A stretch of DNA of 63,986 nucleotides, the filler included, from Lenisia limosa (Eukaryota; Protista; Breviatea), in NCBI GenBank assembly GCA_001655205.1. It is 10 parts of 10 records of this genome, joined end to end, with 100 filler letters (N's around TTAATTAATTAA, not from the genome) between each part and the next. Parts side by side here need not be neighbours in the genome. Positions count along the whole stretch, not along the records: positions 27,152 to 55,065 come from LPNZ01008366.1; 9 more parts are not named here. One strand, 5' to 3'. Both the position numbers and the translations under genes were made by a program. The notes beneath the pieces were generated by a model, which made no database searches, was not told the origin of the DNA, and saw only the letters and a list, made by a program, of their open reading frames with translations. Below are positions 6,201 through 48,500 of this stretch, piece by piece; positions within the stretch are counted from its first letter, which is position 1, and every line of letters begins with the position of its first letter.

Positions 6201-9200
6201 CACAATGTCGGCATCAGTAGCCACCATTTCACCCGCTCTGTCGAAGTTTGTGAAGAGAACCTGCAAAATGAACAACAGATAGTGGGTGGAAAGGGAACCT
6301 CGTATGATATGTCTGTTTTGGTACTATTGCTTTGTTTGCTTCATGGTACTTGCTGTAGTGATGCGCACTTAACACAAAAACCTCCTACCGCCAAGAAGAG
6401 GTTAAGAATCAAGACGGCACCGATGAGCACAACCACGATGAAGAAGATGGAGATGGTCCAATCAGTCGCCCGCACTCCGTCAAAAAGCGGCTCGATCCAT
6501 TCGCCGCATATCATGCGGAAGATGGACCAAAGGGCATGGTAGATATCGTCAAAGTTGGTCCGCGGCACTCCGTCCTCAAAGTTATACTGCAAATGTCAGG
6601 GAGGTTCAGGGCTACACTGTAAATTGAGAGTTTCAAACTTCCATCTTTTTTGACCAAAGATATCAAGACCATATGATATTAAGTTGCAACCACCCACCTT
6701 GCCACCAAGCATCTGCATCCCGGTGAGAGCACAGATGAAGATGACCAGGAACGTGATGAAAGTGATGTTGCCGAGGCTTGACAATGACCGAACCATTGCC
6801 AACAGCAGGATGCGGAAAGATGTCCATGCTCTGAGTGATATTAGATGTATGGGGGAAACCGATACTATGTCGGACTGGCTGCCATAGTTCTAATCAGAGG
6901 CAGAAGCATGCTTTACCTTACCTAGCCAGCTTCACAACTCTGAACAGGCGGAGTGAGCGGAAGGCCGATAAGTTCTGTCCGGCGGAGAAGAAAAGCTCCA
7001 CAATAGAGATCTGCAATGTCAGTGTCAGATGAAAAGGTCCCAGTGACAGGCCTCATGCATACAATGACAATTGTTGCGTCAAATTTGTTCATGGGGTTCT
7101 TAAAGTACATTTTCGGCCCCAGGCCAATCAGTTTAATGATCATTTCAATTGCGAACAAGACAACGAAGAAGATATTGGCCTTGTCTAAAGTGGTAAGTAC
7201 CAGGAGAGAACGCACTTAGTCGGTCTTGTTCCTCATCAGAGAGGTTCGGCGTCTCCATTGCCATCGTCACCAAGTTGATCAGAATCGCAAACAGAATAAT
7301 AAACTCAAACACCTTGGAAGTCAGAAACGAGGGAAAAGTGGAAATGAAAGATAAAAAAATGGTTTCATCTTTATTGTATCAGAAAAAAGGGGTAGATGCA
7401 ACCAACAGACCTGGTGGAAAGCCACAGTGTAGAACACCCCTCTGATACCCTTCGGCTTCCCCGGTCTGAATAGTGTGAAAGGGTTGGCGCGTCTTTGATA
7501 TGATATATATATGATATATGATATATATCTAAATGTATACATGTACAGTATATCGACTTCTCATTGAAAATCAGTCAAGACTTATCCCGATCCCTGGTTG
7601 ATATGCATTATTATAGCAATGAGAAAAAAAACGCTACCAAAACTTCGGCTTCGGTTAGTGCATAGTTAATACAAACAATATCCATTATTTGTGTGATGAG
7701 TATTAGTTTTAATGCAAAAAGCACAGAGTTCTGTGCTTTTGAAGCAATAGGCACAGTGTCGTCATCCCCATGTTAATAGGGGACATAAACAACAGCCAAC
7801 CTGGTGCCTTCATCAAGACTGTGGTCCTTCGCCGCTGTCATGCCATTGAGGGGATGGTCCCCTGATCGTGAGGAAAATCCCGCTCCCCACGTTGTCATAT
7901 CACGTATTCCCACATCCACAGAATAAGGACTTCAAGCCCCCTCTCTCCAAAATATCCACAGAATCATTTAGAGATGAAAACTAAAAGGTGGTTGTATCCA
8001 TATTACCCCCCCCCCCCCCNNNNNNNNNNNNNNNNNNNNNNNNNNNNNNNNNNNNNNNNNNNNNNNNNNNNNNNNNNNNNNNNNNNNNNNNNNNNNNNNN
8101 NNNNNNNNNNNNNNNNNNNNNNNNNNNNNNNNNNNNNNNNNNNNNNNNNNNNNTAGAGTACTTTTTGTAAAAACACCTTTTGTATGAAAGATTTTTACTT
8201 CCAAAATCGAGAAAATAAGTTCTTAAATAGTATTGTACAGCATGATGGGAAATACTTCGAACTTATTCCCCCAACTCATTGTCTCCATCAAGTGATCGTT
8301 TGAAAAGTTGGGTTTTCACAAAAATGTATCATGGAGGGGAGAAAATGAAATATGAAAACGACGAACAGGGAAATACGGTCATTTTGGAAGGTCTTACCTC
8401 ATAGGCAGACGAAATAACGGCCAGTACCAAGTTGATCTACAGCAGGTCAACACTCCAATGGTACATGTAAAAGTGGAAAGGGTACGAAAGACTGTTATAA
8501 TATCCATAAATACAGGAATTTATCGAAATAATACCGAAAGTGAACCCTCTCTTACAATGAAGAAAGCACCGATCATAATGAGGAGGAAGAGGTAAATGGA
8601 GACCCATCGAGTTGTCATTTGGAGGAACTGCTGGTACACTCCTTCCCACTCATCAAGCATCACGATTTGGAAGATGGTAACTGTACAGTTAGCAAAGATT
8701 CCATTAAAGTCCCTCTTTGACATAACTCTTTGACATAATATCGTGTATTTTGATAATTTATAGACCAATGTGCCCTCATAGCCACCCACTCAGCGCATAG
8801 CCAATATTGTCGAATGTGGTAACACCTTCATTGGGGTTGTCAGCATTTTGTAGACACCTGTAGTGATAAGTAAACCCCTAACCAGAGCTTTTCTTTGGCC
8901 CTATAAGACCCATAAAATATCGATATTAATCGAGGATTTAGGTACTGTACGACTCTACAATCCAGAACATCACAGTTTTGCTTACGCAGTTCCGTCCACA
9001 CACTGCCGGCCGAAGCTAGGGTTCATAGAGCATAGATAGTCTTGCGAAGTGTCCTCCAAACCATCTTGACCATTAGAGCGCTTGACAAACAAAGGGCAAA
9101 TTCCGAGGCAATATATTGCACCACTTACCCGGAAAGAAGCATCGTTGTCTGAATATTCCTTGAAACATCTGGACTCCGACGATACCGAAGAGAACCTAAG

Positions 9201-27051: not shown

Positions 27052-27394
27052 NNNNNNNNNNNNNNNNNNNNNNNNNNNNNNNNNNNNNNNNNNNNTTAAT
27101 TAATTAANNNNNNNNNNNNNNNNNNNNNNNNNNNNNNNNNNNNNNNNNNNNAAAGGTCATTTTTGAACGTATATATATACCATATTATATAGTATATGTA
27201 AATATACATTTATATATTACATGTATGTATAGTACATATGATATGAAATAATACATGTACATATAATAAACTATATCATATGATATCCTATCATACAATC
27301 TAATATACCATGGTTTATAATGTTGTGCAATTTATTTATAGTACAATTGTGTCGGCGTGTTTTCTTAACACCTCCAAAGGATTTCACAATATAG

Positions 27395-30300
27395 GACAAA
27401 CTCGGCGCGTATATTGAGAACCTTCTGTCTCAGTCTGAATTTATCGACATTCTCAATCCTGCTCCAAGCACAAATGAACTCTTTATAAGGCTGAAGAAGC
27501 ATTCTGATTTCAAACTTCACCTTGCTGTTACCGAAGACAGTCGGAAGGTCAAGGTACCAAAGTTGAAGACTGGCATTGCAAGCCGGCTGCTTTCAATCAA
27601 TATTCCCAAACCCAACTCTTTGGAAACGGAAGAGATCCTTACTACTTTTGTGAAGTCCAAATGCAATGCTGACAGTGTTGATATCCGAAAATTCTGCAAA
27701 AAAATGGTAGTATTCAGTCAAAAAATTGATTCTCTCGATTATGGATCTGAAAAGGGAAAGCCCTGGACTTCTGTCACGTTATCACAGCTCATGATGTGGG
27801 TGCGTCTTCACCTCTCGCAACGCTCGTGGTCGGATTGTCTTTGTCCTAGTGATATGTTTCAAGTATTTGGAGCAAGGTTGACATGTAATGAAAACAGGAC
27901 AATGGTGACAGAATTGATCCAGCATGAATCGAAACAACATTGCGCAGTGCCAAATGGAATTCAATTGGATGATCAAACCGTCACTATCGGAGGGCAGACG
28001 AAGGAACTTAACTGTTCAGATGAGGATCTTGCCTGGCTGACTCTCTTTCCTTGGACCCCTGATCAATTGGCAATTTTGGAGTTTTCCCTCAAACAAATTA
28101 TCACTGGAGTAGGAAATGCAATTCTACTGACTTCTAGCGCCTCCGAAAGTTGTGGCAAAAACGTCTTAGCTTGTGCAATTTCATTTCTTCATGGACCTCG
28201 GAAGGCATTAGAAGTGAATGTCAACTGCGAGTTCACATCATCCAACTTCATTGGTGAGGACTGCATGGACCCAGAGACGCAAGACTCAGTCCATCACCAT
28301 GCTCCAATGATCCAGTGTTTCAAAGAAGGTGGAATGTCAATTTTGAAGAACCTCAATTCGGCACCTCTTCCTGAGGTCCCAAGAGTATTTGACTTCTTTT
28401 CGATTGAAAAAACAGCTATGGCTACCTTACATGAAAATTCTGAAACAGAGACTAGCTCTAGTCATCCTGAGTTTTTCACTTTGGCAACAATACGCCGTAC
28501 AAACGACCAATGTGATTTCTCAGATTCATTATACAACAAAGTGTTCACTTATCACGTTTCAAGTATTGAGGTTGGAAATGATTCTGTTACAGAAACTCTC
28601 AAGTCCTTGGCCAAAATATACAAAATGTCATCTCAGTCCGAAGAAATACTACTAAATGCCTCCCTCAAAAGTGTTCCTTTGAACTCTGTCACAAATCTCT
28701 TCAAGTCATGGGGGTCTTTGAAGATGACCATGGCTCATCGTGACATTTCTGATGAAGATCTGTTGCGTCTTGCTGCAGCCTCAGTGGAACAACCAGGGTG
28801 CAATATCTTTAAAAAATTGACTGATAAAACGCCTTGGCAAATCATTGACGGTTATCTTGACCACCTAATGAAAAAAAACCAAACAGACTATATCATTTCC
28901 AAGAGTGTTCCACTTCGATTCCACATGCTCAGGACAATTGCGCTGTCTTTTCTTACTGGTTTTGGTGTAGTGTATGAAGGTCCTCCAAGTTCGGGCAAAA
29001 CGTCACTGATCGAATATTTCATTGAGTGTCTGCAAAAGCAACCTGAATACAATTACGTCAAGTGCCACAAGATAAACTGCAACAAAAACACTGAGCTAGA
29101 TGACATTCACGGCAAGCCAAACACTACTGGTAAATTCAATTTGGGCCCCTTGAGTCATGCTGCAAAGTACGGCCATGTTGTTCTGTTTGATGAAGGTGAC
29201 CTTCTGCTGAAGCGTTACCAGGAGAGCATCATGATTTACACAAAAAGCAATGGTGGTAAAGTCTCGGTGCCTGGAAGCAATGAAGTCATTTTGGTCCATA
29301 AGAACTTCCGCATCTTCTTCGCAATCAATGGAAAACACTGCGGGTCTTGTGGAAGGGAAGTATTGGGAAGTGCTATTGCTTTGAACACCCTCAAATATGA
29401 CGTACCAGAGTTCAACCAACAGGAATTGGTCGAAATCATCCACCGGCTTGTGAAGATTTCCCATGAAAATGCCAACGAAATCGCGGCCTTATTTCTGCGT
29501 GTTACTGCGCTGAAATTCGGTATTGGAACTCTGAGGGAAATCAAACGAGCAATAGTCCGATCTGACAAGACGACGAATAGTATCAAGTCTCATTTGGCAT
29601 ATATTCTCAAAGGAAAGGCCAAGAATGAGAAGCAAGCCGATTGTCTCAATGGCCTTCTTGCACCTTTGGCAGGAAAAGCCGCTCGGAACGACCAAACCAC
29701 TCACCACCTTGAACGAATTCAGCAAAGTGAAGGATCTCTTCCGGGGCTGGACTGCTCAATCAAGAATGCTCTGTCTTCTGTGGCCAACATGACACCTGCA
29801 GTAGAACGTCTCCATCAGGCCGTTGTAAACCATGAGCCGGCACTTGTGGTTGGCCCCACTAGCTACAAAAAACTTCTGAGGGACTTTGTGTTTCGCACTG
29901 ATGCTGAAAAGACGGATGTGTTTGAGGTTACCGGAAGTGCAACAGATACGGTTCAGTACATGATTGGCGGATACACGTTAATGACATACGAACAAACTGT
30001 TCATTTGTTCTTGAGCCGTATTAGGTGCCTGCTCTCAATAGTTGATTCAAAAGCGAAGAAAATCTCTTTGTATGTCGTTGATGAGCTTCAACATCAAGTA
30101 GACAAAATGATGAAGGCATCAGCTTCTGACTCTAAATCAAAATGCGACAAGCCTGGTGAGGAACAAATCGCATCAGTTCTAGAAAAGAATGACCAAAAGG
30201 TCCCAAAGTTCAAACCTATCAGTAATGCTTTTGTTGAGGATGAACTGAGTGGCTATGAATCCTATGAGCTGTCAGAATCAGATAATGATGCCCTGGATCC

Positions 30301-33300
30301 ACTTGAAGAAGATAATGATAAGACTGAAGGATCCACACCTGTTACCAAACCGTTACATAAAGTTATCTCCAATTGCACACAACTAAGGTCACTGCTCGAC
30401 AGATTTCACGAAGTAATTGCGACTAGAGACAAAAATGCTACTGAACTCTATCTTGTTGATGAACTGGAAATTCTTGTTTCAAAATTGGAGTGTTCGGAAA
30501 AGGATTATATTTCACAGAGTCGCCCCCTTGTCATTTGGAAAAATGGCCCTTTTTTGCAAGCTATGATAGCAAGTTTGACTGCTAAAACCTTGTTTGTGAT
30601 TAAAAATGCGGACAAATTTCCTGCTAAAGTTGAACGGTTCAATTGCCTCTTTGAGCACAATGCAAACTTCATTCCATTTGAAAATACTGAGAATATGCGT
30701 TCTATGTTTGTCAGTCCCAATCTTCAGGTTGTACTGGTAGCTGAGACGTTGAACCAATTCAGTTCAGCACTTCTCTCGCGGTTTTCCGTTATCAAAACTA
30801 CAATGCTATCCGAAGCTGAGTTGGTAAAAATGATGACCAATATCCTATCAAGTTCCGATTTTGCACCTGAAAGTTGTCAGAAAATATGCAGTAGTTTCTT
30901 GAAGGACTCTATCCAGGGGCAGCCGCATACTTCTCGGTCCGCTGTCCAGTTCATCAAGGCTGTCAAGGTGCTGGCAGAGAACAAGCCTCTTGCAATTGCT
31001 GCCGGACTAGCCTACATCATGGTCGTAAAATTGCCGCCGATTGACTTGGAGAAGGTGGCAAGAATGTTTGGAGTCCAGAAAGAGGACATTTCCTTTCCAC
31101 TTCTCGACAATCTGCGTTCCAACAATACTAACCTGGATGGATGGGCGGAAGTCAATGATAAACATTTCGTCTTAAAGTCAACAGGCCTCAGGATTAAAGT
31201 CAAACCAGAAAGCCCTGCATCCCGAGGAGACTCGATGGGGATTACCATTACCAATGGTGTTGTGGCTTACATTGAACAAATTGTCCTCTCATATCAAACC
31301 GGGGTAAAACTCCTTGTGGAAGGGCCTCCTGGTACAGGAAAATCTGCTGTTCTGGAGATGTTTTCTCGTTACATTGGAATTCCGTACATTCGTTTTGTTT
31401 GTGGAAAAGACACGGTTTTAGACGACCTTGTGGGGCAGTCTATCCCGACAATTGTGGACAGTGAATTTAAACTCCTCTTTGTAGAGGGGCCACTAACAAC
31501 CGCAATCAGTCAAAAGGCAATCATTTGTTTGGACGAGTTCAACAACCTGTCTGTCAATACCATGGAGCAACTACTCAAGTTTTTCAAAGAGGAAACCTAT
31601 GTTCTCCCTAATGGGGTAACCATAAACACACAAGACGCATCTATCTACGCCTTACAAAACGAAGTTTCAATGGGCAGCTTCAGAGTTCGTCTCCCCTCCT
31701 CGATTGTGTCTTGTCTGACAAAAACCAAATGTGTTTCGAACATTGACGAGGACCTTCTCAAGGGGTTCAACAACTTCCAAAATGTGATACGGAAAGGTCT
31801 TCATGAAGACCACGTTATGGGCCTTCTGAAAGCATTTAAAGTCTTGTCTCTTCACTGTAAAAGAGGTGATATTGGCGTTACCAGCTACCAGGGCAAAGTG
31901 GAACTTGATCTTTGCGTAATTGAACATTTAGTCCAACTGCTTTCAGTTCTTATTGATTCATCGCAATTGGAGTCTTCTTATATCAGAAGCCTCGTGGCTT
32001 TTGACACAATTATTACCTCAAGATTCTCCAATCCTGACGACATTAGCAAGGTCAAAGAAGTTTTGTCGTTGTATATGCCTGGACCGCCACAGATGGACAA
32101 GATGGAGAGCTTGTTCCAAGATAATCTAATTGCACTTAAGATATTTGGCATGACACAAATTGGAAATCACTCATATGTTAGTCACAGAAATTCCAAAATG
32201 GCTATTGGTTCTTCAAAGTTTCGCAATTATGTTGCAATGAAGTCACATTCGGCTGTTCTGGAAAAGATATGTTTGATTATTCAAGCTCATTTGACTCCTG
32301 TACTCTATGGTCCACCTACTGCTGGAATTACTTTTATGCTGAATCATGTTGGTTACTTGTTCAATCAGGAAGTTGTCACGGTAACGCTCTCACCATATAT
32401 CGACATGTCTTCATTAACTGGTTGTCTCAGAATCATCAACCAGGGAAAAGTAATTGAGAGTATTCGTAGCTGCATCACTTCTGTTCAAAAAGACCTGATC
32501 AAGAAATTGCGCGATTGCTTTGGGATTTTGCCAATGGAGAGGTCACACCAAATACGATGTGTCTGTGAAGTGGGACAACTTCAACAACATCAGATTGAAC
32601 AGGTAGAAGAACATGTGAACTCATGGGAAAATATTAAAAATTCCGAGCTAAATGCTATTATTGAAGACTTGAAGGGCCTCAGAGAATCGCTTCTTTTGGA
32701 AGAAACGGCTCAACAAGGAGGAACAGCAATCCGGTACTTGGAAGGGCCAATTGTGAACGCTGTGCTGAATGGTCATATACTGTTGATTCTAGTTGAAGAA
32801 GGAACCCCAGATACCACTGTTGACTCTTTAAACTCTTTATTTGAGAAGAACCGCACGTTTACAAGCAATGGTCGAGTTCTCTCATATGAATCTGGCATTC
32901 ACCCACTCTTCCGCCCCATCTTTGCCATCACAACCGGGAGCAGTCAGGTTCAACTGAGTCCTGCAATGCAAGACAGAACCAACCCAGTTTTGATTCCTTC
33001 AATCGATTCTGATCAAGACACCTTTACTGAAATTTTGGAGTGCTCTATGTATAGCATCCAAGGTCGAACCTCAATTGTGAAATCCCTTATGACGTTGAAT
33101 CAGAAGAGCAGTGAAAAGCGCCCATCTCTTGCATTGCTTTCATGTTGCAAGCACATTACAATGCAGAGCTGCAAGATTAGGAATCCAAAACTCGAACAGA
33201 TACTTGTAGAGTCTTTCTTGCATCTGTTTGTCACCCCACTTCAAATAGAAGACAGAAAAGAAAAAATGACAAAGTTGGTGAAAAAGGAAGTGATGGAAAT

Positions 33301-36300
33301 TTGCAAAACCCTTCATACTCCTGATCGCTCCTTACATCTTACCCTTGATGAAGTGAAGGATTACACTTCTGAAGGGGAAAAAATGGTTGAAAATGCTAAG
33401 ATATCTCTTCTTCACTCAATTGCAACATGCATCTTGGAAAACCTGATGTTTCCAATGGAACAATAAGGCTGCTAATCAATTCTACAGTATTATGTTCATT
33501 AATCAATTAATTGATGAGCTTGATGAAAAACAGAAGTCCATAACAGACTACTGGAAAGACCAATGCCGTAAACTGAGAAAAGATACGACCACTCCAATTA
33601 CACTCATGGACAATGAGGCTATCAGGAAACTACTGAAAACTGTGCTTGAAACAACTCCCATGGCCAATAAGTTGCAAGTGATTTCTAAATCTTTACAGCA
33701 GATCACTGTTATAGCCAAGTCCTTCCTAAACCTGATTGAGGATGCCAAGACCAAGAAGCCCAAGTGGATCATTGGGCTCTTGAAGTCATACAACCACTTG
33801 AACTTTGTTGTCAATCATCTAATTAAAATTGACCACAAAGGCATACATACATTGTGTACAATTCTTGGCACTCCGGAGATAGTCTCCTTAGGAATTCTCA
33901 AGAAAAGCCAGATTGCTCATATCATGTCACAAGGAAACGAAGCCTTTAAAGAGCCAGCATTGGATATCAACTCTAAAAGACAAGTGTTCTACAAAACGTT
34001 GCTAGATGTGGACTTTGACGATGAACTTATGGCCAAAATCCATGCTGTCATCCGTGCTATTGAATTGCCCATTATCTCCTGTTTTGAGTTCTGTCACTGG
34101 CCAGTAAGTCATGCTGAGTCACCGGAGATCAAATCCACCTCAATTGTAAACGCCCTCAATAACCTGCAAACTTGTGACTGCATACAAGAGGTAACACAGC
34201 GACTTCTTTCGATCTGCAATGGCAATGGCGAGAAACAGCAAGTTTTGGAAACAATTGGGGATTCCAATGCATTGTCATGGATGAACAAGTTTGCAAAATC
34301 AAGAGTTGAGGACCACTTTAAGGAGGTCATTGAATCCACATTTCCCAATGGACGTGTTTCTACACGCAATATTGGCAATTGTTCAAATAATGAGATTTTG
34401 CCAACTGTGAGCTTTGATTTCCTCTCACAGGTTGCACTGGTTCTCGCTTTGCGACTTTCACAAATTAGAAGTGACAGCTTGGTGTTCTTTTGCAACGAAC
34501 TTGACGAGATTGAAATGTTGGTATGTCAGCTCGCCGAATATCCGTCGATCAATGCGCTTATTGTTACGACTGAGGTCATCGTAAATCTCTCGCGATATGA
34601 AGAAGAACTTCAACTCACCACGTACACTTCGGAGTCATCAGATTGCAATTGGTCTGAAACAGTTAAAGCTATTGCCAGTCGGTTTGCAAATTCAAGCCTC
34701 ACTGAAGGGTCAACAAACGCTTGGGTCCGCAGATCCCGTGCGGTAAACCGAGAAGAGTCTTGTCAGGTTGCTGCTCTTTGCTATTGTCTTCTCATTAACA
34801 TTGACCGAAGCAATATTCCTCGTCAAAGAAGGACTATGGCAAATTTGCTTGACCGATTTCTTGCGAACAATCAGTGCCAAACACCCAGTCCACGATCTCA
34901 AAGGATGTATTCCATTAAGAAAAACGGAGTTGTATTGCATAAAGCAACTCTTACACTTCTGAATTTGGTTCACATTTTTGCTGATGATAGAATTTCCAAG
35001 CATGATTTGCAACGTGAACTTTCGGTAGTCTCAGTTGGCCAAGAGCGCCGGGATAGCTCAAACTGCCTCACGTCTGGACTTAGTAAAGAGGTGATATACG
35101 ATCTCTCCCGAGAACATGCCAAATTAGCCCAGTGGCCTGTTTTGGCACAGTTCCAAAATGGGAACTACATCAAAGACAAGCATGAACTACTCAAGTCTGA
35201 GATGTATCTGAATTTCAAGAGGTACTGTGCTACCATAAGGCTACTATGGGATATGCCAAATTGTAAGACTCAAGCGGCTGTCCTCAACAGTCGCTTAGTT
35301 GTGAGAACAATTTCTACAGTTCTTGCCAAAATCTTTGCCATTCTTGAAAGTGTCTTTATCAAAACGGATAATAGAGTAGAAGTTCAAAAGAAACTCTTCC
35401 TTAAAAATAGGATGGTTTCTTGTGTTCAAGAAGACTCCAAAACTGTGCGTATTGTTTCAACATCTTCTGAAGATATGCTCCAACTTTCTGAAATACTTAA
35501 GGGCCTCAAATTGGAAGTGACACAGCCTCCAAGTGACTCCGACGATATTCCACAGCTTCTGAAAACATTGGTGATGGTCGAGAAGCAACTAAAAACAGAC
35601 TTCTTTACAGAGAACATTACTGAAGCAGGTATGTCACTGAACGAAGATATCGAATTGGTTTCAGAGAAGCACCAGCAAATGTTTGCCAAGCCCTCGCTTG
35701 AAACACCAGAAGAGCCCAAAATTACGAAACCAGTTCGCAACGACTTCTCAATTTCCGAAAGAGACAAGGCCAAGTCAAAGTTGCTCAATGAACTTCTCAA
35801 GGATTTAACCGATTTCATCATGAAAATCAGATGCCACTCTAGTTCACAGTATCATTCTCTGCTCCACATTGCCCAACGAATGAGGCAACAATTGGTCGAA
35901 CTGGATCAAAATGGGTTCCCATCGGATATAATACTTAAAAAAGCCAAAACTGAAATCCAGAAAATGCTTCAATATGAAAGGGAACTCAAATCATCTAAAG
36001 GTGCATTCTTAAAACAGCAAAACTTGCTTCAGAGTGGACTAGGAGTTGACATTGACCCTCCATGTGAAGCTAGTTTCCCCAATGGTCCTTATCATGATGT
36101 TGCAGAAGCCCTCTCCAAAACAACAACGTTTAAACAGCTTTCACACATTGGTATTTCCGAGGCTTATCAGCAGTCATTCCTGAGGCAGGTTCAAATTTAT
36201 ATCTTAAGGCTTCGAGCTCTTTGTCACGATACTCTCGAAAATATCTTCGAAATTGGTCATCTCATTAAGGCACTTATGGCTTTGATTGAAGATAATGGCC

Positions 36301-39300
36301 TTGTTGAATTAGAGCACCCGCTTAAAGTCTTCGAGCAAGGCGTTTTGGCAACCCAAGAAAACCATTCTGATCTTGACCAAAACTTGCTATCCAATCTATG
36401 TGAAGCAGTCATTGAGATTTCAGCCAAGACCAAGCCAGTTTTTCTCTCAGCACGAAGTCTTGATCTCATTGCCACCAAGGAGATTGAATTTTCCGCCAGT
36501 CTTGCTGACCTGCATCCCCAAGTAATGAACTACTTAGAGAACTTGGAAAAGATCGAGGAATTAAAGACAAAACTCCCTACATTTCACGGAGCCCAGTTTT
36601 CAGTCCTTGCATGTCTCCATCAAATTGGCCAGTTTGGAATTGAAGCAAAAAGTCTTGATGTGAGCATCTTCGCTATGTATCTTGACTGTGGTGAGAGTGT
36701 CGAGATTCCCTGCCTCAATGAACCCACAAGGAGTCTGTTGAACGAGTATAATATAGCACTTCAAAAACCGCTTCTTCAAAAAGCATTAACCCTAACGTCA
36801 TTGTTCATGAAAGCACTGAATGTTTCTTTGAAATCCTTTGATGAAGGCACAATTATGGCAATGTATTCTGATAAATGGCACACGTTAGCCTACCACCAGG
36901 CAAGAACTAGGAATACACAAGCGAAATTGGCCGAAGAAAGTCGCAAAAAGCAAACAGCCAACTTGTCCGAGTTTGCTAGATGTGTCAATCATACATCTAA
37001 CCTCCTTGAAAACTGTTATGCATATTTTTCTGATAATTCTGAAAGGATCTTCGATGATCTTAGCAGTCATGAATTAGGTTCTTTTAAGGCTATGTTGAAC
37101 AAGTTTACGTGCATCAATGTTAGATCCGTTTTTGAAGAATCATCTCTTCCTCCAGACGCCCTGAAATTACAAAGAAAAGTGACTACAGCTGTTAACTTTT
37201 TGAAAGACATGCTGAACCAGCTAACTCACTGGGCAACGGCTCCGCTGCATTCAGACTGCGATGAAAATTCAGCAAATTGAGTTAACGAGTCTTGTGATTG
37301 TATCCGCAACGTATTTTCATCCCTGCCTGATCTAAACAACGCAGAAGCAGATGACATTCTACAGAATCTTTCTGTTCTTGTTGAGGAAATACGAAACCAT
37401 TCATTGGATAGCATAAGTCAACTAGACTTGTGCTGTACACAAATTCTCTTTTCTCAGGCAATGCTCCTCTTGCAACAATACAAGAGATCTTTCAACACGA
37501 AGGATAATGAGTATTTGACAAATCTTCAGGAACTTGCTGAAGCTTGTCAAAGCACACACCCACTCGAGGTATTTGTTGATGCCAGAGATTGTCAGGCAAG
37601 ATGGACAGTTCTGAAAAGGAAATCTACGCTGCAACTGGCCAACTTATCTCAACATCGAGACGTCCTTCTTATTGATAACGGATTCTCTAAAGAGCTCCAT
37701 GAAACATGGGAGTTGGTTCAAACAGACAAGGTTCAGCCTGCACCATTAAACCACGACAACACAAAAACGGCTGAGTATCTCCTTCTATCTGTCGCTTATG
37801 GACGCAGTATTGCCCAGATGATTGGTAATATCCCGCAGTCAAGCAGTATATGTGATGTGGCAATATCACCAACTTTGTCAGGCTTTGGTACTAAACTTTT
37901 TAAATGCCGTTTTGCCAAAATCGAAGACGCAGAAGCCCCAATGCGCCTGGAAATGATTGTTGCTGAAGGACTATCAGTTTTGGAGTTTTCCAAGATACCA
38001 TTCGGAGAACTTATTGAGTCTTTAAATAGTAACTCAGAAAACAAGTTGGATTGTATGGTAATTGCTGCTCTGAAGGAACAACTACTTTCCCTTCAACTTG
38101 AAGTGGTTATTTGTCAAATAGACCAATCATTAACTGAAAGGATTGGTGACGGTGATGGATTACTGAAATTAGACATTCTCTCAGTGTTCAAGTACATGAA
38201 ACACTACCTAATGAAGCTGTCTACTCATGGAATTCAATTTTCAGCACTTCATCAAATTGTCAGCGAATTTGTTAAAGATTCCAATGAAGTCTCTTCTTTG
38301 GAAGAAGTGGTGTCAATGATGTGCAAATATGAAGGTGCCATCTCACAGCAGTTCAACTTAGCTCTTGAGAATATTTCGAAGAACAAAGCTAGAAACCAAG
38401 CACTACTCAATGAATCTATGAGGGTTATTGAGGAATTGAACGACTGGGTTTTATCGATAAAAAAGTGTCAAGAATGGAACATGATACTTTACCAATCACT
38501 GCGTTACAAATTGGAAGGAACAATTACCAATTTTAAAAAAGATCTCAATTACAAGCTTCAAGATGCCACAGAGAAATATCAACTTCGACAAGAAAAGAAG
38601 AACAAAGAATACCAAGATAATAATGAAGCTTATGGTGATTGCCTGCAGGGATATAAGGAAGATTTGGAGACATATGCCCTTGAAAGTGAATTAAGATATC
38701 CCGCTGTCCGAGAAAAACTTGTCAATGTGGCACGTTGTCTCAGAAAGCATGATGTTCATATTGCACCTCTATTTAAGACATTAAGTCGAGTCACATTTAG
38801 GTTTACATCCTACAATGACTATTCCAACCCTAAAGCAAGCTTCAGATTTTTTAGAAATAATGAAGAGCTGCAATTCAAATTAGAGAAGCAGTCAACAGGA
38901 TTCAATTGGACCACAGTCAAATCGAAGTGGTCATCTCTCACCGGTTCAAAAACACAATACAATATTAATTTTGTTTTGAATCTTGGTGTTATTGGCTATG
39001 AAGTTGCAGAGTCACAAATTAGGCTTTCAATGAGAATTGATGGGTCTGACTATGAGATTTATCCAATTCAACTTGATTTGACGAAAAAGTACCATGTTGT
39101 TTTCGATAATGATGATAGTATGAAGATGACATATGAGAGTCATGAATTCATCTATCAAACAACAGTTGACAGCTTCAACCAAGGACATAACCGCACCACC
39201 TCCAATCTTCAGGAACTGTACAGAAAGGTTCAAGCGCTCAAAAAACCACGACCTCCCAAAGAAGAGCAGTTTGACTATAACGGGGACCTGACACACATTA

Positions 39301-42300
39301 AGTACTGCCAAAAACGCCTCCAGAAGTGTACAGAAGATTTCCCCCAAAGTGGAATTGAGCTGGAACAACATTTTGCAAGCAGCAGAACAATTAATAGAAG
39401 AGTTGGCAACTTTATACAATGCTATTTCTGCTGGAAGAGGGGCTTTTAACTTGGTGGAAAGCTCCATCGAAGAGCTATTGATTTTACTGAGACAGTCCTG
39501 TGTTGAAATTATCCGGAAAGAACAGGTACCTCATGATGACCTGAAAGTTAATAATGCTAGACATTACATTGATGAATTAACTACCTCATTTGCAAGACAA
39601 CTTCTCAAATACATTTGCAATGTAATTCATGTAGATCCTTCATCAAAACTAGATAAAAGGAACACCTTTTCAGGCTTCCTCTTGCATCTCGAAGTGAATT
39701 TGAAAAGCTATTCGGAATGTCAAGAAGGTCCACGATTCTACAAGAGATCATTCAAAGGCGCTTCCATCAAAGCACAGGGTCTCAAATCAGTAATGTTCGC
39801 TGTGCTGAGCTTCGACAACTTTTATCATCTGCCCACGATCCAAAGAAATATCTTCACACCCTGACTACTTCCATACAACAAACTCTTTCCCAAGTTCCAC
39901 CTCAACGATGTATTAAAGGTCCTCGGCTCTTGAACTCTTTACAAGGAACACAAAATGTGTGTAGGAAGAACTTGGTTGTTGAAGTTGATACTGGAAACGA
40001 CGAAGGCTTGCAGTTGGGCTTAGTGGAGTTCGGATGGGTACTCACAAATAGTTCTCGAGGATCAACAGCATCTATTGACTTCTTGAACACGGATGTTACT
40101 GCGTTGAACATCAAGCTTGAGTCCTCTTCTGAAAACTCGTCAGTCTCCTTTAGTCATAAGGCCTTTTTCTTAACTGAAGATAAGAAGACTGTGGATGTCT
40201 GCTACCGAACAAACTCAGACTCGCTTCCTGGTAAATGTGTCTCTTATATCACTGTCTATGTCAATAACGAGGCAGCAGGACTCATCGAATGCTCCGCTTA
40301 TCATGAGTCATTGACATTGTTGACACCCCCTCAAGTTGACCTTGGTGTTCCCCAAGAAGGAAAAACTCTCACTTCTGAGCTGATTGTCGAGAACAAGACT
40401 CACTTACCTGCTCTCGTAGTACTGTCTTGCAATTATTCAAATATGGTGAAGTATACCCACGCCCATTCCAGTATTGCTGCGTTGTCAAAGTCGGCGTTCG
40501 AGTTCCAAATCAACGTTCAACGCCTTCTCAACATGGCCAAAAGAGATCCAGTTCAACTAAGGCTCTACACTTCAAGCGACAGCTTCATTCCTTTCCATTG
40601 AAATGGAAGACGGAGATACTTGACGTGAAAATCTGGTTCAGAACTCACTCTATGAAAGAAGGTGTACTTCTTGCTTCAATCACAGAAAGAGTTTGCGGAA
40701 AATTATTCGTTAAAAAGAATATACCACACCAATCTTGTTTCCCATTCCGCCCAGATGTACCTGATCGAGGTATCATTCTCTATGCCACCAACATTGGCAA
40801 TGTGACATTGGACTTGGAGGTCAAATTCCAGAAGAAGATAATAAGCTGTCATTCAATTCCAGGTGAAACGGTTCAACATCGTATCAATGCTGGATCAGTG
40901 TCATCTTATGCAGTTTTTACAATTCAAACGAAGGAGGGTGGACGCTGTTCCAGTGTTCAGTCAACTTCAGTGGGCTTCAAGCGCAGCTCAATGACATTTG
41001 GAATGACAAATAACACTTCCACGAAAAAATTGTATTTTTTTCTCAGTGGTTGCTCAGGCAATTTGGACTCCATTGTTACTACTTCCGGTGCAGGAACAAA
41101 CATTGGCAAGTACATCAATATGTTTTCCACAATCAAAGCGGACTATCATAGCAAGTTGGTGACACCATGCCAGGAGGGCCTCATGCATTTTACCTTCGTA
41201 ACAAAAGAAATTCCTTCAAATGCCACAGCTAGTTCGGTTGTAAAAGAATATCAACCAGTAAGCAAGGGGCAGCCCTTTACACTCTTCGTCCAACTTCCCC
41301 CAAAAGGTAAAGAGGAGTTGTACACCAGTGTTAGAAATATTGGCAAGGCCAGAGCTTCCTTGAAATTCTCTGAATTTAGTTTGAATGCTTTGGTATCAAA
41401 CAATGACAAGGCCTCATGCACTTGTAAATGGTTGGAGACACCACATTCGTTGAAAGCAAATAGCGAGGATAGCGTCATTCGATTATCAGTGAATTCATCA
41501 GCGGTGTGCCAGACAGGTGACATATTTACTTTCACTGCTTCAATGACATCAAGCAATGGGTACGTTACTGGTTTGTATGTAGTTGTGTTCATTAATGAGG
41601 AGACCAATACGGAGACCACTTTCCCTTTCTTTTGCAAACCAGAAAATTTTATCAACTACGACACTCCACCTGCATTAGAGCACACCTTGGCTCGTGATGA
41701 CTACAAAGGAACGTTCTCTACACTCAATGGTCTCTATGGTGAACAGACTGGATTTTTAAGCTCCTTTGAAGGTAATTGCCGTCTTCTCATTGCGGGAAGG
41801 GATCAAAATGCGTTGAACTCACGACTCTTGGCAATAACGGGCCTTCCAGTACAGGCGCTATTTGATGATGGTGAAGAAATCAACCCAAGTCACATTGATT
41901 TTGTTAAGCATGTTTTCAAAATGATCAAAGCCATCACAAAGTACCCTGTGCTTCTTGAAGGTCTTAAAGAAAAGCACCATGCTCTCTCTGACAAAGTTAG
42001 ACTGGTTAATGATCTTCCTGCAATCACCTCAGAGACACTTCTCAACTGGGGATCCAATAAAGAGGACCTTGCTGCTATTATCGTACTTGCTGCCCATTGT
42101 CTTGCTGAAGTTTCGGAAGTCATTATCTCAATGCCAGCAGAAACAGCAACAGATTGTGGCCTATTTAAGTATAGTATCTTTAACATCCATGATATTGAAA
42201 AGGTCGATATTTATACCCAGCCAGAGAAAGTGATAATGGAGGAGTTTAAATTGGATCACAAAACAGATCATTTCAGATCAATGAAGGATGAGACCTCTCC

Positions 42301-45279
42301 TTCCGAAATCCCTTCTCACGATCATGATGAAGCTGGTGGTAACCATCACACAGCCGACGGTGATGAAGATGAGGCTTTTCAAGACGAAATGAGCAAAGCA
42401 ATGGAAGCAATGGAAGCAATTCATGTTGTCAAATGTCTCCCCAACAAAGACGATTCTGAGGCTTACACTACTTTCTTTTCTGTTATCCAAGAGCATGTAT
42501 CTGTGATCCGCTCTAGTTTATCCTGTCTAATTAGCCTCTCCGCCAAGCTTAACGTTACTCAAGTCCAGTGTTTCTACCAGCAAATTCTGCAAAAATCGAC
42601 AAAGATGATCGATTTAGTCAATCTTCTCGAAAAGTTCCAGCCTTGTCATGATCCGTTGATAGTTTCAAGACTTGCTTATCACCAGAATCTTCTTGACAAC
42701 TGCCGCCTAATTCAGAGGCAACTCGCAATGATAGATGGTAACTTGAATATTGCTCCAAATAAAGAATCGTACAAAAACGCTCCTTTTGCTATACGTGATG
42801 AGAACGGCGAAATTAATACTGAATACACTGATCGCAATATTGCAGAACAGATCATTCAAGATGAAGAAATGGTAGACACTATCGCCTCTTACACCTATGA
42901 AGAAAATGCACCTGAAGTTCATGATACCTTCAACACCACCACCATGGCAGCCTTTATGTTTGATGATAAGGATATTGGTGGATATTTATCAGGTCTAACT
43001 GATGCTACAGTTGAAGATATTAAGGAGACTACAAGCATGGTACATCATGTTCACAGAGTGAGTCATTCTACCGTGATCAGCGACTTTGTTCCTACCAAAA
43101 AAGCAATGGATCCCATCGGAGATCTATCAAAAATCACAATTTCTCTTGCTGACTTCAAAGCCGACCCCAAGGCCCCATCAAGACGCCATCGTGAAGAAGA
43201 CGATGATGAAGTTGAAATGGTCAAGACAACAATCACAGCGGAAGTTCTTGAGAGTCTTCTTGCATCGGGAACATCATTTCATGGCGGCATTCTAAGGTCC
43301 ATCGCGGTTGACCCAAGGGTTGGAGACACAAAGCCGCCCGACAACATTGAACCCGACCGAACCACTATGCCGTTCTCAAAACTGACAAAGAGCCTCTTTG
43401 CAGCATCACTTGACCTATCCAACAAGGTCTACAATACCTTCCAGTCTGTGCAAATGAAGACAAAAGTCGATGTGGCCCATGAGGTTGTGATGGCTATTGA
43501 CGGAAGTCTTTCGAACCAGGTAAACATGCCGTCAGTTCAAAGAGCACTCTGCACGTTACTACAAACATTTAAAATGTGCGAGGAAGTTCGCTTTGGAATT
43601 GTAAAGTTTGCTCAAAAGTCAACAGTTCTCAAAGGACTCAATACGGGACTCTACGGACAGTTTGTTCTTGAGAGTCTCTCACGACCCGAAGTGATGTCTA
43701 AACCTGTCACGTGCCTTAGAGACATCTCAATTGACAATAATCTCTTTGGCGCCCCGAAAACCTGTCCTCGTATCCAGTTGATGATAACTGACGGGCTTTT
43801 AGAGGAGCGCAATAAGGCGGAATGGAATCTATATAGTAACAACAGCAAGGCCCTCCTTGCCGTTATTTGTATTGTTCCACCTGAAGGCCACCCAAACTAC
43901 AGGGACCATGTTAAGGAAGCACAAGAGCTACTCAATGATGTAGCACCCGAACAGTATATCATCATTCCAGGGAACAAGATTTCTGATTTGCCAATACTCA
44001 AATTGTATCCGGCCTGTCTAAAACACCAGCTCCAACTTTTATAATACCTTCTGAGGTTCTTAAGTTCCGCCATGATGATCGTCATGACACTGAAGTGTAC
44101 TCCTCGCAACAAGACAATGACGGTGGATACGATGAGGAGATTCAGCCTTCACTGACTAGAGGAAAGGAGAAACTTCGTATCAATATTGCCCAGGTCATGG
44201 AAGTTCTTTCTGATGTATGCAATGGATCAGGGAACGGAAAATTACCCAACACGGAGTTGAAGAGGTCGAAGAAGAAGGTCAGAATTGTTGAAAACGGCAA
44301 GACTGTCACAGAAGATGACATTCTGAATTCAATCAAGAAGTCAAGCTTCTACAATGAGATTTTCAAGGAGAGTGAAAAGATTGAAGTTTGTCTCCAAGCC
44401 TCAAGACGCCAGGGCGCTGGTCCTGGCTCTCTGGATTTAGTCATAATGCTGGACCAAACAGGATCAATGCATGCTTTAAGCAGCCAGTGGAAGCTCAAAA
44501 TCAAGTCATTTGTCCAAGAAATCAACGAATTGAACAAAAAGTCAGGAATCTCTAGCTTCAGGTTTGGTGACCAGTTGTTTCTCATACCATTTGTTCTTTA
44601 AGTATTCCCATCTAACGAAACAGAATTGGAATTGTGGCCTATAGAGATGTTGATTTGCCTCTCAATAAGCAAGTAGAGACTCTCAATTTTGTTGACGCAA
44701 CAAATACTGCTCAACTGGAAGCTTTCCTTGCCCAGTCTCTTGTGGATGGCGGAAGTGATGGATGTAAGTCTGGACTTGAATATTCCGACGACCCGAAGAT
44801 TGATTAAAGACATCTCATTTTATACAATACTATTTTTATAATATCAAAAAACACATTTATGACGATCTCACTTCATAGGTGAAGACGTACAAGGTGGTTT
44901 GAATGCAGCATTGAGCATGAAGTGGATTGCCAGCTACAGATGCTGTGTTCTCATATGTGACTGTCCTGGTCATGGCAAGTTCTGTAATCCCACGGGGTGG
45001 AGTGATTACTATCCCTCTGGAATTCCAGGAAGACCAACGATGGAGACTCTTATCCAAAAAATGAAGACCAATCACGTGAACTTCATTGGCATTCCTCTTC
45101 ATTCCATTTCACACCACATGTTTAACAAAATCAAGGCCACTTACGAGAGCTATGAGCCAAAGAAGTCACCTCTTGGCGCTGACTTAACAGCAGTCATACA
45201 CCCAACGTCAATCGAAAAGCTCGATTTTGTTGAGAAGGTGCAATCAGAGCTGGTGGCCCAGTTGAAGACGCTTGGATAG
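27395..45279 (+). pseudogene. Giant midasin-like multi-AAA+ / Ig-like / double-vWA protein gene (~5,900 aa visible); disrupted as assembled, 5' end missing
   Basis: Seven consecutive ORF blocks continue one protein. Walker A or degenerate equivalents at ~28140 (SASESCGKN), 28979 (GPPSSGKT), 29852 (GPTSYKK), 31322 (GPPGTGKS), 32309 (GPPTAGIT), with GP-L..A...G..LLDE and HP.FR.F motifs; the tail of one more module at 27395-27600. vWA1 AIDGSLS...MITDG (~43480-43800); vWA2 MLDQTGSM...IGIVAYRD...GGSDGCEDVQGGL...ICDCPGHG. Clear introns only at 44562-44623 and 44764-44878. In-frame TGA at 37278; frameshifts near 33450, 39342, 39655, 40590, 44000. Confidence 0.8.
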
Positions 45280-45512
45280 GGTTTTCCTATTAGTATATAT
45301 TTTTGTTCTCTAGTTGTGTCATATTTTATCTCAAGAAAATGTACCTTACTCTAAAAAAGACTGAGAAACAACTCCATATGAGTATACAATATGACTATAT
45401 GGCACCCATACCCTACCATCATTTGAAAGAAATATATGAACAAGAAGAAATTAGTCATTTCCAATCTAAAAGAGAGCATCCATTTATACCATTCAAAATC
45501 AGTTACTGCGCT

Positions 45513-48500
45513 CTAATACGCCCTGAACCATCCATGAGACTTCTGACCGACCTCAATGCCTTTAGGGCTTTTCAGGAGGCGGAATATGTCCATGAAGAAT
45601 TTGTCATTATCGATCACCATCTAAAAATGATCATCACATCTAAATGTAAGCGTTGTTTTCAATAACTATTGTATGATATGGTAGAATGATATAATAGACT
45701 TTAATACTATGTAGTATATACTATATCGATATATTATAATAAAATCATAGTATATCATATAAATATATATCAATATATAATACCCTCTCCCCCGCTCCAT
45801 TTTTGTAGAATGTTTTAATTCTTCTTCCACTCATACCCTCCTGCAATCCGGGGAATAGTTAACTTCCAATACAACCGGATCTGATGTTGCACCAGAGAGA
45901 TCGAACATCACATCAACACCATAAATAGCGCGGCTGAGTGATGACATAAATACATCATATGATATGATAACAAAAGTAAGTAAGCAAATAATCTTCAAAA
46001 AAATAAACACCACGATACAGCATTTTGTGATAGACCTCGCCAACGAGTTTGCTTGGAGAGTTGCACTTGGTGGAGTGAACAGGCGATTCGATTCCGTTTC
46101 TTCAATCACACCACCTTGGAGGAAGCCTGAGAGCACTGCTCGAGTTGATGCTTCATAAACGGCGTTCACTGCTGAAGTATTCGGACACCTAACTTCCGAA
46201 CTGATCCGAAGTGAAAACTTAGGAAGCTAGAACATACAATGTGACAGGGAATCATGACACAAATAAGAAAAAGTTGGTTGAAAGAGCACAATAATAAACT
46301 AACTTGAGGAACCTTCTAAAGCTATCTCCCTCAAATTCAGGGATCACATAGTCCACGACCTCGTCATCTCTACCAAGGAACATGGCCTGTAAGGTCACCG
46401 GGTACAAGAAATTTGATTTGTACGGAAGTATGCAATTCTGTGAGAGCAAACCGTCTGGTGAATTTCATAATCATTGAGAGAGGAAAGGTCAATAGTGTAC
46501 TTCTTACTCGCAACTCTTGGAAAGAGCTCTAAATACATCATTTAAAAAATGTAACAAAGTCACCATCATTCGAAACGCTTTTTCCAAGAAAAACGATACA
46601 AGGTGATAATCTCAACTGACTGGTAGTAAACATGTGACATGTGACACGTGACACATATTGCATACTATAACCTGTCTGTTAGCATGTGATATACTTCACC
46701 TGAAAACCAAGTAACGTACTCGGATACACATAAACCTCGGGTTCGGAAAGAGTTTCGTTGGGTCGAACCGCTACCATGACACGGATATCGATCTTGTGTC
46801 CCTCATAAAGCAGTGGAGACATGATGTCTGTAGTGTGACTTGATATCAATCAAGAAAAGCGTTACTATTTGGAAAAGAAACTAAATAGGGGAAGTAAGGT
46901 CCCCATTCCTCGAAATACAAATGGAGAAAAAAAACACGAGCTGACATTTGCAAGCGATTTTAGGAGAGCCAAGACTGAGGAACGCCATGTCATCCTTCCT
47001 TGAAGTCACCCATAACCCTGCTGACCTCGAGGCACTGTATGGTTTCACCATCATAAGGCCTAATGGTTAAGATACTAACATACAGTATATATTTAAGATG
47101 AACCGTCTGGACAATAGGTGAATTGAATCACTTCAAAATATAATCTCCAGAACAAAAACTGTTTATGATGAACAAAAAAACCATGGATAAGCCAACCATT
47201 ATGTTGATCCATGAAGTCAAGAGCCAGGTCTAATTGCGATGTTAAATCAAAGGTCTCCGCGAGCCTGAGAGATTAACAGAAGGCTAAGCAATTGGCAACT
47301 TGCCTTGAGCAAAAAATGAAACTAAAACTACCCTCCAATTCAAATTCACGTGGCATACCAGGGAACTGTGCCGAAAACATGCTGTACTCTCCTAAAATGT
47401 AAAAAATCATGAAAGACCTTATTCTCATCGAAACGAGATAAATTAGATGTGTAAAGCAAATAATTTTGAGAGAGTCAACAAGTAGCAAACCTAAAGAACA
47501 GATCCTTGACTGTAAAGCAGTTCTCCCCGGGGAAATAATTCATGAGACAGTTCTACAAGTTTAGTGGTTTGGACCTCAACGCCACTTGAATACCTCCTTG
47601 AAAGCGGCTGGTCTCAATTTTGTCGATGTGTACACAAAGTCAGCCTCATCACGATCAGAAGTCTGGATGGTGATGAGGATGATTATACTGATTATGGTGA
47701 TAATGATGATGATGATGATGGTGGTGGTGATGATGATGATGATGTGGGGGGAGGGGGAGGCTCTCATTACCCCTTAAACAAAGTTGATTTGTGTTTGCTT
47801 TTTCCTCATAATTTCTAATTTTTAACTCTTTCTCTCCCCACCNNNNNNNNNNNNNNNNNNNNNNNNNNNNNNNNNNNNNNNNNNNNNNNNNNNNNNNNNN
47901 NNNNNNNNNNNNNNNNNNNNNNNNNNNNNNNNNNNNNNNNNNNNNNNNNNTCGTGCTATGATAATGAATGAAGTTTCACTCCAATGATGAAACAAGTTAT
48001 TGTGGACCCCAACCCACAACAGCGAAATCCTCGGCGCCTTCCAGGGCAGACTTCACCAGGTCAAGGTCAGTATAAACCTTGCAGACCCCAGCCTTCCTCT
48101 TCCTCCTTTTTCTCTCGGCTTGAATTGGCTCTTTTCCGCTTCGGAAGAACTCCAGGTTCAGCTCATCAAAGTTCCGACTCTCTTTTGAGCCCGGCAGCGA
48201 AGTGGTTAAGGAACTCAGGCTGATTTCTGGGGGGGGGGGGTTGGAAAAANNNNNNNNNNNNNNNNNNNNNNNNNNNNNNNNNNNNNNNNNNNNNNNNNNN
48301 NNNNNNNNNNNNNNNNNNNNNNNNNNNNNNNNNNNNNNNNNNNNNNNNNNNNNNNNNNNNNNNNNNNNNNNNNNNNNNNNNNNNNNNNNNGTAAACGAAA
48401 GGGCCATCTGCGCTGCTGCTTTTTGAAGTGGATCCTATGAAAATGAAAATTGACTTTTGCCAGACAAGTCAAGTCATATTAGAATGTTATTTTTTATCAA

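Follow-up and report, generated by a model that had tools for sequence, protein, structure and literature searches.

A probable, highly divergent member of a widespread and apparently undescribed family of giant midasin-related AAA+ proteins, disrupted in the assembly of Lenisia limosa

Midasin (MDN1/Rea1) is usually treated as a single, essential and universally conserved motor of ribosome maturation, and in Rea1 the ring modules AAA2 to AAA5 look catalytic. Several AAA modules per chain are also found in VWA8, the dynein heavy chain and RNF213, and VWA8, a protein of about 1,900 amino acids (aa), ends in a vWA domain, with the AAA modules leading directly into this one domain and no long linker between them. 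MoxR–vWA pairs occur in prokaryotic conflict systems, and the MoxR–vWA and CbbQ/NorQ systems are single-module homohexamers whose vWA domain is usually a separate protein and which have neither a linker nor an Ig array. In these systems an AAA_5 ATPase partners a vWA domain that acts as a metal-dependent substrate adaptor (PMC3495828). Here we describe a gene at positions 27395–45279 (plus strand) of a window of 63,986 nucleotides (nt, filler included) from Lenisia limosa (Breviatea; assembly GCA_001655205.1), which lies in the piece 27152–55065 taken from record LPNZ01008366.1. We consider it likely that a giant AAA+ protein related to midasin is encoded here in a highly divergent copy, inactivated in this assembly, and that this copy belongs to a widespread eukaryotic family that has no name so far.

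The piece 27152–55065 is a eukaryotic nuclear contig with a guanine plus cytosine content of about 40%, and an Rfam scan of it gave no match. Contig NODE_352 of the ENA assembly ERZ3820729 (27,801 nt, coverage 35) is letter-for-letter identical across the 16.3 kilobases (kb) compared, and a Logan contig of run X1 (20.6 kb, word depth 40) also matches the piece. On the plus strand, an unbroken coding signal extends from 27395 to 45279, which amounts to about 17.7 kb once two introns are removed. The giant frame consists of six long open stretches of 2,023, 1,277, 722, about 190, 314 and 1,221 codons, followed by a three-exon 3′ end. According to a hexamer model that was trained on the long open stretches of the giant gene itself, coding potential is handed over from frame to frame without any non-coding gap at all five frame changes, including the one at about 44010–44040. 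As a single coding signal covers the six stretches and the spliced 3′ end, the ancestral gene encoded about 5,900 residues on this contig, and the continuous signal bears out the giant frame of this size that an initial annotation, made from the sequence alone, had placed here. The spliced conceptual product terminates at the TAG at 45277. At the other end, the frame opens immediately 3′ of 243 nt of AT-rich non-coding sequence at the contig edge (27152–27394), which ends in ATATAG and is probably an intron or an upstream region. The ENA contig reaches only 35 nt further, and the 5′ exons, which would encode the N-terminal domain and the part of AAA1 with its Walker A and B motifs, lie beyond the contig.

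The N-terminal part of the conceptual protein (the query) is an AAA+ ring. While Pfam AAA_5 recognises three modules, hidden Markov models (HMMs) that were built separately for each of the midasin modules AAA1 to AAA6 and scored against the query modules recognise five full modules and, at the contig edge, what remains of the C-terminal part of a first one, and the six modules with a truncated first one that had been noticed initially were thus recovered. The score matrix is dominated by its diagonal, with modules 2 to 6 scoring best against AAA2 to AAA6 (9.8, 54.9, 13.3, 70.9 and 66.3 bits, respectively), and the ring therefore is a midasin-type concatemer in the ancestral module order. The AAA1 remnant comprises residues 1–140 (27395–27814), and its residues 23–137 match the equivalent part of two other giant proteins, P0005 and P0006. 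AAA2 (28007–28849) has a degenerate Walker A motif, SESCGKN, in which the CGK is kept, and its Walker B motif is lost (KNLN). AAA3 (28892–29770) carries a canonical Walker A motif (GPPSSGKTS) and a Walker B motif with the DE pair (LFDEG), and AAA5 (31247–32209) likewise has a canonical Walker A motif (GPPGTGKS) and a DE-type Walker B motif (CLDEF). In AAA4 (29777–31099), the P-loop PTSY-KKLL is one residue shorter and the Walker B motif is lost, and in AAA6 (32228–33244) the Walker A lysine is replaced (GPPTAGIT) and the Walker B motif is degenerate. Since AAA3 and AAA5 alone keep canonical Walker A and B motifs, these two modules are the predicted active sites, which differs from the AAA2 to AAA5 pattern of Rea1. 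A HMMER search of 1.84 billion representative sequences returned 913 ring relatives, and among the 150 best relatives listed, none is more than 31% identical to the query, apart from the window's own protein; a word-based search found the window's own protein, one distant match and nothing else. The closest solved structure is that of Schizosaccharomyces pombe midasin (6or5; E 6e-21). Two peculiarities of the ring may be added here: AAA4 contains an acidic, serine-rich insert of about 90 aa (30100–30370, residues ~900–990) between its degenerate Walker A and Walker B positions, and the part from AAA3 to AAA5 is about 110 aa longer than in fungal midasin.

The ring is followed by a linker of about 2,200 aa (33245–39956), which matches no Pfam family and has a composition rich in helix-forming residues. 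The long linker of the initial annotation was recovered, and the helical or coiled-coil character ascribed to it is suggested only by its composition. About 2,240 aa past the ring, two tandem Ig-like domains of the ASH/HYDIN/CFAP65 type begin (39957–40598). They were assigned by structural and feature matches of an ESM Atlas model of exactly this sequence, which has a predicted template modelling score (pTM) of 0.69, a template modelling (TM) score of 0.74 over 188 residues to a HYDIN-like cluster, and a feature score of 0.95–0.96. The adjacent beta-rich region (40601–41700) possibly contains more Ig-like domains, as suggested by its composition and by a low-confidence AlphaFold2 model with predicted strands; single-sequence AlphaFold2 predictions gave a predicted local distance difference test (pLDDT) of 31 for 40601–41800 and of 35 for 43286–44041, Pfam gave no match in the beta-rich region, and internal-repeat detection among the Ig and beta-rich regions found no repeats. 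Thus, of the previously noted array of beta-sandwich repeats, two domains are established and the continuation is tentative. Similarly, the D/E-rich tracts that had been described reduce to a mildly acidic spacer (42180–43380), in which three 100-aa windows reach 19–26% D/E. Pfam scans of the pieces of the tail detected nothing except a weak VWA match, and the tail matched neither the best 150 ring relatives (blastp, phmmer) nor a profile of the tails of P0005, P0006 and P0017 (hhalign).

The tail ends with two vWA domains. The first, vWA1 (43475–44041), contains the MIDAS motif DGSLS followed by ITDG; it is recognised by Pfam VWA (E 0.0015), and it aligns with the midasin MIDAS profile over the generic vWA core only (hhalign 94%), and its similarity to the midasin MIDAS domain is weak. 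The second, vWA2, is encoded by three exons: exon a with the DQTGS MIDAS strand (44407–44561), exon b (44624–44763), and exon c with GGSDG-CEDVQGGL and ICDCPGHG, which ends with the TAG (44879–45279). The exons are separated by two GT-AG introns of 62 nt (44562–44623) and 115 nt (44764–44878), and both introns are confirmed by a spliced RNA contig of 293 nt from a polyA library of the same study, which matches with zero mismatches, so that the vWA2 exons are transcribed and spliced. Both vWA domains retain the DxSxS or DxTxS strand together with the downstream Asp. With exon c alone, ESM Atlas and PDB searches returned chance-level matches only, and it was the spliced sequence that could be matched to a known domain type, as described below. 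The presence of two vWA domains in the initial annotation is hence supported, for vWA1 by Pfam, hhalign and phmmer, and for vWA2 after splicing.

How does this protein compare with canonical midasin? With S. pombe Mdn1 (6or5) and, for example, the midasin of Pseudovirgaria (P0013), it shares a ring of six dynein-related modules that are arranged in the same order within one chain, a very long linker, and a C-terminal vWA domain with a DxSxS MIDAS motif, here vWA1. It differs by the additional ASH Ig domains and the VWA_4 domain. In an IQ-TREE phylogeny of AAA3, AAA5 and AAA6 (LG+G4), 24 canonical midasins are split from the query and 23 non-canonical proteins, i.e., ring proteins without a midasin-type MIDAS domain, with an ultrafast bootstrap (UFBoot) support of 100. 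Thus, AAA2 to AAA6 do map one to one to the Rea1 modules, yet the ring lies outside the canonical clade. Against an HMM of 70 midasin C-termini, vWA1 scores 18 bits, and the three real midasins listed alongside reach E-values of 1e-114 to 1e-135. The midasin-type MIDAS domain, to which the UBL domains of Ytm1 and Rsa4 bind, has an N-terminal extension, and this extension is absent from vWA1 according to HMM and hhalign comparisons, in which only the generic vWA core aligns. A long D/E-rich domain in front of the MIDAS domain is not present, as the D/E content is at most 26% per 100 aa and reaches 19% or more in only three windows. When pieces of the linker were compared with a profile of 30 midasin linkers, hhalign probabilities did not exceed 0.3%, with a sensitivity that is limited by the single-sequence query. 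On sequence grounds, the gene is not canonical MDN1 but probably a paralogue of midasin to which other domains have been added, in agreement with the earlier view of a midasin-related giant that has diverged far from true midasin and carries extra domains, of which the Ig domains and the second vWA domain are real.

The query shares features with a family of giant proteins. A search with the C-terminal tail of P0164, a protein of Rotaria sp. Silwood1 (CAF3709476.1, 6,456 aa) that ends in VWA_3, VWA, VWA_4 and VWA_2 domains, yielded at least 26 giants of 3,571–7,907 aa that combine subsets of a shared set of domains, namely AAA_5, AAA_lid_7, HYDIN-type Ig (PF22544), ASH (PF15780), Cep192_D3 (PF22067), VWA_3, VWA, VWA_4 and VWA_2. 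They come from bdelloid rotifers, in which the family is multi-copy, from Bryopsis and Chlorarachnion, and from metagenomes; examples are P0183 from Bryopsis sp. KO-2023 (BSKO_10123, 6,477 aa) and P0185 from Chlorarachnion reptans (MMETSP0109, 7,408 aa). The architecture is therefore not lineage-specific, contrary to what had been assumed initially. The automatic names of the relatives are "unnamed", "Midasin", "Dynein heavy chain" or "MoxR-like ATPase". In the family, a single-chain AAA_5 ring with six modules leads into a linker of some 2,200–2,500 aa, which is followed by an Ig array of the ASH/HYDIN type and, after a spacer, by a vWA domain of the MIDAS type and additional vWA domains, among them one of the VWA_4 type. 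In P0182, which is encoded by a complete open reading frame of 7,465 aa from a eukprot transcriptome, the ring extends to about residue 2289 and is followed by the linker, an Ig array at 4806–5104 that comprises Cep192_D3, ASH and HYDIN Ig domains, the first vWA domain at about 6379–6530, VWA_4 at 7067–7196, and VWA at 7269–7419.

Three parts of the query can be aligned with this family. Its ring matches the rings of ten family giants over 1,552 columns (hhalign 100%, E 2e-49), and at two places the family has signatures that are absent from canonical midasin, E-G-CGKS in AAA2 and the one residue shorter PTS-x-K-T-LL in AAA4, at whose aligned positions the query has SESCGKN and PTSY-KKLL, so that E-x-CGK and PTS-x-K-x-LL are common to both. 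In the family, the Walker B motifs of AAA2 and AAA6 read DN, and the query is further degenerate at both, and AAA3 and AAA5 are the modules with a DE-type Walker B motif, as in the query. vWA1 matches residues 6379–6530 of P0182 (phmmer E 8e-10) and is thus homologous to the first vWA domain of the family. Spliced vWA2 matches the VWA_4-type domains of the family (phmmer E 3e-19 to 6e-14; hhalign 99.2%), and its alignment with the Rotaria protein P0164, with 32% identity over 183 aa, spans both exon junctions. The matches of vWA1 and vWA2 are colinear with the family order. The Ig pair of the query is found at the same relative position as the Ig array of P0182, and hhalign detected no direct sequence similarity between the two Ig regions.

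The query is the most divergent member that we found. Only two vWA domains are present in it, compared with three or four in the others, and counterparts of the second and fourth vWA domains of P0164 are absent from it; the nucleotide sites of AAA2, AAA4 and AAA6 are further degraded; its ring scores 49–65 bits against the midasin module HMMs, whereas the other non-canonical giants score 55–186 bits; its linker cannot be aligned with that of the family; and it carries six frame-breaking lesions. The clade of non-canonical rings includes proteins of Rotaria, Adineta, Brachionus, Owenia, Hondaea and Ectocarpus as well as metagenomic giants of 6.8–8.0 thousand aa. Among further giants with midasin-type rings (P0004, P0011, and the group of P0005, P0006 and P0017; 5.8–8.0 thousand aa), the tails are mutually unalignable and Pfam-blank, with weak matches of P0006 to Cep192_D6 and CFAP65 Ig domains about 2,600 aa past the ring. 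There seem to be several undescribed subfamilies within the non-canonical branch. A full-text search, which missed most subscription-journal papers, found no paper on a giant AAA_5/ASH-Ig/tandem-vWA family, and the architecture apparently represents a widespread, undescribed eukaryotic family that is a variant of the midasin type.

In the Lenisia assembly, the frame of this gene is broken by five frameshifts and one in-frame stop codon. The frameshift S1 (+1; 33447–33463) lies on the palindrome TTTCCAATGGAA, S2 is a TGA at 37278–37280 that is due to a base substitution, and S3 (+1) is confined to a window at 39292–39446 that contains TTTCCCCCAAAGTGGAA at 39338. S4 (−1; 39657–39861) is without a TTTCC-N-TGGAA motif, and the window of S5 (−1; 40379–40598) is followed by the stop TGA at 40599, which lies within the palindrome TTTCCATTGAAATGGAA. 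At S6 (−1; 43987–44041), which also lacks the motif, the TAA at 44042 ends the long frame and coding continues without a gap in the next frame. At the lesions, the window agrees with the ENA SPAdes contig (coverage 35) over S1 to S5 and with the Logan contig (word depth 40) over S3 to S6, and the three assemblies probably rest on the same reads. Introns at S1 to S6 were considered and rejected, as every frame-restoring GT/GC-AG candidate is shorter than 30 nt or removes coding-looking sequence. An alternative genetic code or Euplotes-type +1 frameshifting was ruled out as well, since both TAA and TGA are used and the shifts are mixed +1 and −1. As the five frameshifts and the TGA break the frame, a full-length product is impossible, which is in line with the disruption that the initial annotation had reported and suggests a pseudogene. 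The frames are otherwise intact over thousands of codons, and any inactivation must therefore be recent. Exactly three copies of the motif TTTCC-N(1–10)-TGGAA are present in the 17.9-kb gene (33449, 39338 and 40592), and all of them fall within frameshift windows (S1, S3 and S5). The three are TTTCC-N(2–7)-TGGAA palindromes or quasi-palindromes that correspond to short hairpins. The pattern was noticed only after the sites had been viewed, so that its statistical weight is uncertain, and the coincidence may reflect a mutational hot spot, an artefact or chance.

If the intact members of the family work like Rea1, ATP turnover in AAA3 and AAA5 would drive a remodelling of the linker, and a partner protein would, by the same analogy with midasin, be held through its acidic side chains at the metal-ion sites of the vWA domains near the C-terminus. 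Docking of the machine on a larger assembly may be the task of the Ig array, and the outcome would be that a protein is pulled or stripped from a non-ribosomal complex. ASH/HYDIN Ig domains typically occur in proteins of cilia and centrosomes, and their presence suggests docking on a large cellular assembly. Both the force-generating mechanism and the class of substrate are what we infer from these analogies.

Several aspects speak against our interpretation of the locus as an inactivated member of this family. The terminal branch of the query ring has a length of 4.0 substitutions per site, long-branch effects are therefore likely, and the placement with the family is not secure on the tree alone: without the query, the 23 non-canonical proteins group with a UFBoot support of 81, and the query emerges from the branch that separates them from the canonical clade. 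No similarity to any family member could be detected for the linker or for most of the tail. The proposed mechanism is drawn wholly from the analogy with Rea1. As to the inactivation, the lesions are known from assembled contigs, the position of three of five frameshifts on palindromes could mean a systematic artefact rather than real mutation, and outside the six lesions the open stretches reach a length of 2,023 codons.

The likeliest alternative is that the gene is intact and functional and that the six lesions are sequencing or assembly artefacts, an allele-specific state, or sites at which the message is recoded or edited in an unconventional way. Apart from the lesions, the frames are pristine across 17.7 kb, the 3′ end is transcribed and correctly spliced, and it is hard to obtain by random mutation that the only three hairpin motifs of the gene all fall into frameshift windows. 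Nevertheless, we think this unlikely: the three assemblies are identical, though one set of reads probably underlies all of them, S2 is due to a base substitution, the motif is lacking at S4 and S6, no GT/GC-AG intron restores any of the frames, and the mixture of +1 and −1 shifts is unlike known programmed frameshifting systems.

The second alternative concerns the 3′ end alone, where vWA2 (44197–45279) might be a separate downstream gene of about 300 aa, with the TAA at 44042 as the natural end of the giant gene. This stop codon is followed by an in-frame ATG (44197), the sole RNA contig covers only vWA2 exons, and the two introns are confined to the vWA2 part, all of which would fit two genes. 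However, the hexamer signal crosses into the vWA2 frame at about 44010–44040, gapless and 150 nt upstream of the ATG, and all full-length family members carry a homologous VWA_4-type domain in the same chain, downstream of the first vWA domain. The colinear order of the vWA domains together with the gapless signal indicates that vWA2 was once part of the same polypeptide and that 43987–44041 is a frameshift and not a natural gene end. The join of vWA1 and vWA2 across S6 is thus deduced from the coding signal, and we regard a separate vWA2 gene as quite improbable.

Another idea came from the initial annotation, in which the protein was seen as a sensor or remodeller in innate immunity or conflict, like RNF213 or the MoxR–vWA conflict systems. 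The fast evolution and apparent dispensability of the gene as well as the expansion of the family in bdelloid rotifers would agree with this, and there are real similarities to the MoxR group, as AAA5 of the query matches CbbQ, NorQ and bpMoxR, and an AAA_5 ATPase that works with a metal-dependent vWA adaptor is common to both. In contrast to the homohexamers of that group, which assemble from single modules, the query has its modules, linker, Ig array and vWA domains in one chain. PADLOC gave only generic matches at the level of the P-loop, confined to AAA5 (best mad8, 29 bits, 48 residues), and none in the tail; Pfam scans found no death-fold, TIR, NACHT or effector domain and no E3 domain; and the Ig domains of the ASH/HYDIN type belong to a kind that is typical of cilia and centrosomes. 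A role in defence is therefore not supported, and we judge it very unlikely. The other proteins with several AAA modules are set apart too: VWA8, dynein heavy chain and RNF213 were not among the ring sequence matches, neither a dynein stalk or microtubule-binding domain nor an RNF213 E3 module was found in the query, and VWA8 differs from it by description in length and domain content.

That the gene is the sole, extremely fast-evolving true orthologue of MDN1/Rea1, acting in 60S maturation, is hardly credible: its ring modules correspond one to one to midasin AAA2 to AAA6, its DxSxS vWA domain follows a weakly acidic stretch in a midasin-like manner, and its AAA3 P-loop (GPPSSGKTSLIEY) is closer to canonical midasin than to the family, but the canonical midasins exclude it with full bootstrap support, vWA1 scores poorly against the MIDAS HMM, the D/E domain and any linker similarity are missing, the family signatures in AAA2 and AAA4, the ASH Ig domains and the VWA_4 domain are seen in no canonical midasin, and an essential gene would not tolerate the disruption.

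Beyond the Lenisia locus, these comparisons show a second and structurally distinct family built on a midasin-type ring, whose members are spread over rotifers, the green alga Bryopsis, the chlorarachniophyte Chlorarachnion and many environmental eukaryotes, with related ring-clade proteins in an annelid (Owenia), a brown alga (Ectocarpus) and a labyrinthulomycete (Hondaea). A description of this family would broaden the range of known single-chain AAA+ mechanoenzymes and offer a natural experiment on how the logic of ring, linker and vWA domain has been reused. The Lenisia copy adds less by itself; its main value is that it draws attention to the family and illustrates what appears to be recent decay of a gene. 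One may go further and propose an ancient second branch of midasins across supergroups, whose members of 6–8 thousand aa would be force-generating remodellers of a non-ribosomal, possibly ciliary or centrosomal, assembly, and in whose Lenisia copy the coincidence of hairpins and frameshifts may reflect a specific mutational or recoding process and not random decay; this is conceivable, and we lean slightly against it.

The surroundings of the gene show some further features. TA-rich low-complexity tracts of the TATATA type, with tandem units of 25 nt and 15 nt, flank it on both sides (27152–27394 and 45680–45830). Just past the TAG, an open frame of 123 codons on the plus strand (45294–45662) has a coding-like hexamer score of up to 16 and has no match in Pfam; it may represent a small gene or a terminal exon that is missing from the annotation, or may be open by chance. 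Convergent with the giant gene, a TTLL12-like multi-exon gene lies on the minus strand (45834–48977), which we recognised by weak Pfam matches to SET_TTL (E 0.005) and TTL (E 0.002), with exons of about 100–145 codons and interruptions by runs of N. There are four such runs of 94–141 nt (47843–47950, 48250–48390, 50399–50492 and 50820–50931), two of them flanked by long poly-G tracts, and the runs probably stand for gaps in the scaffold or for low-complexity sequence that was masked.

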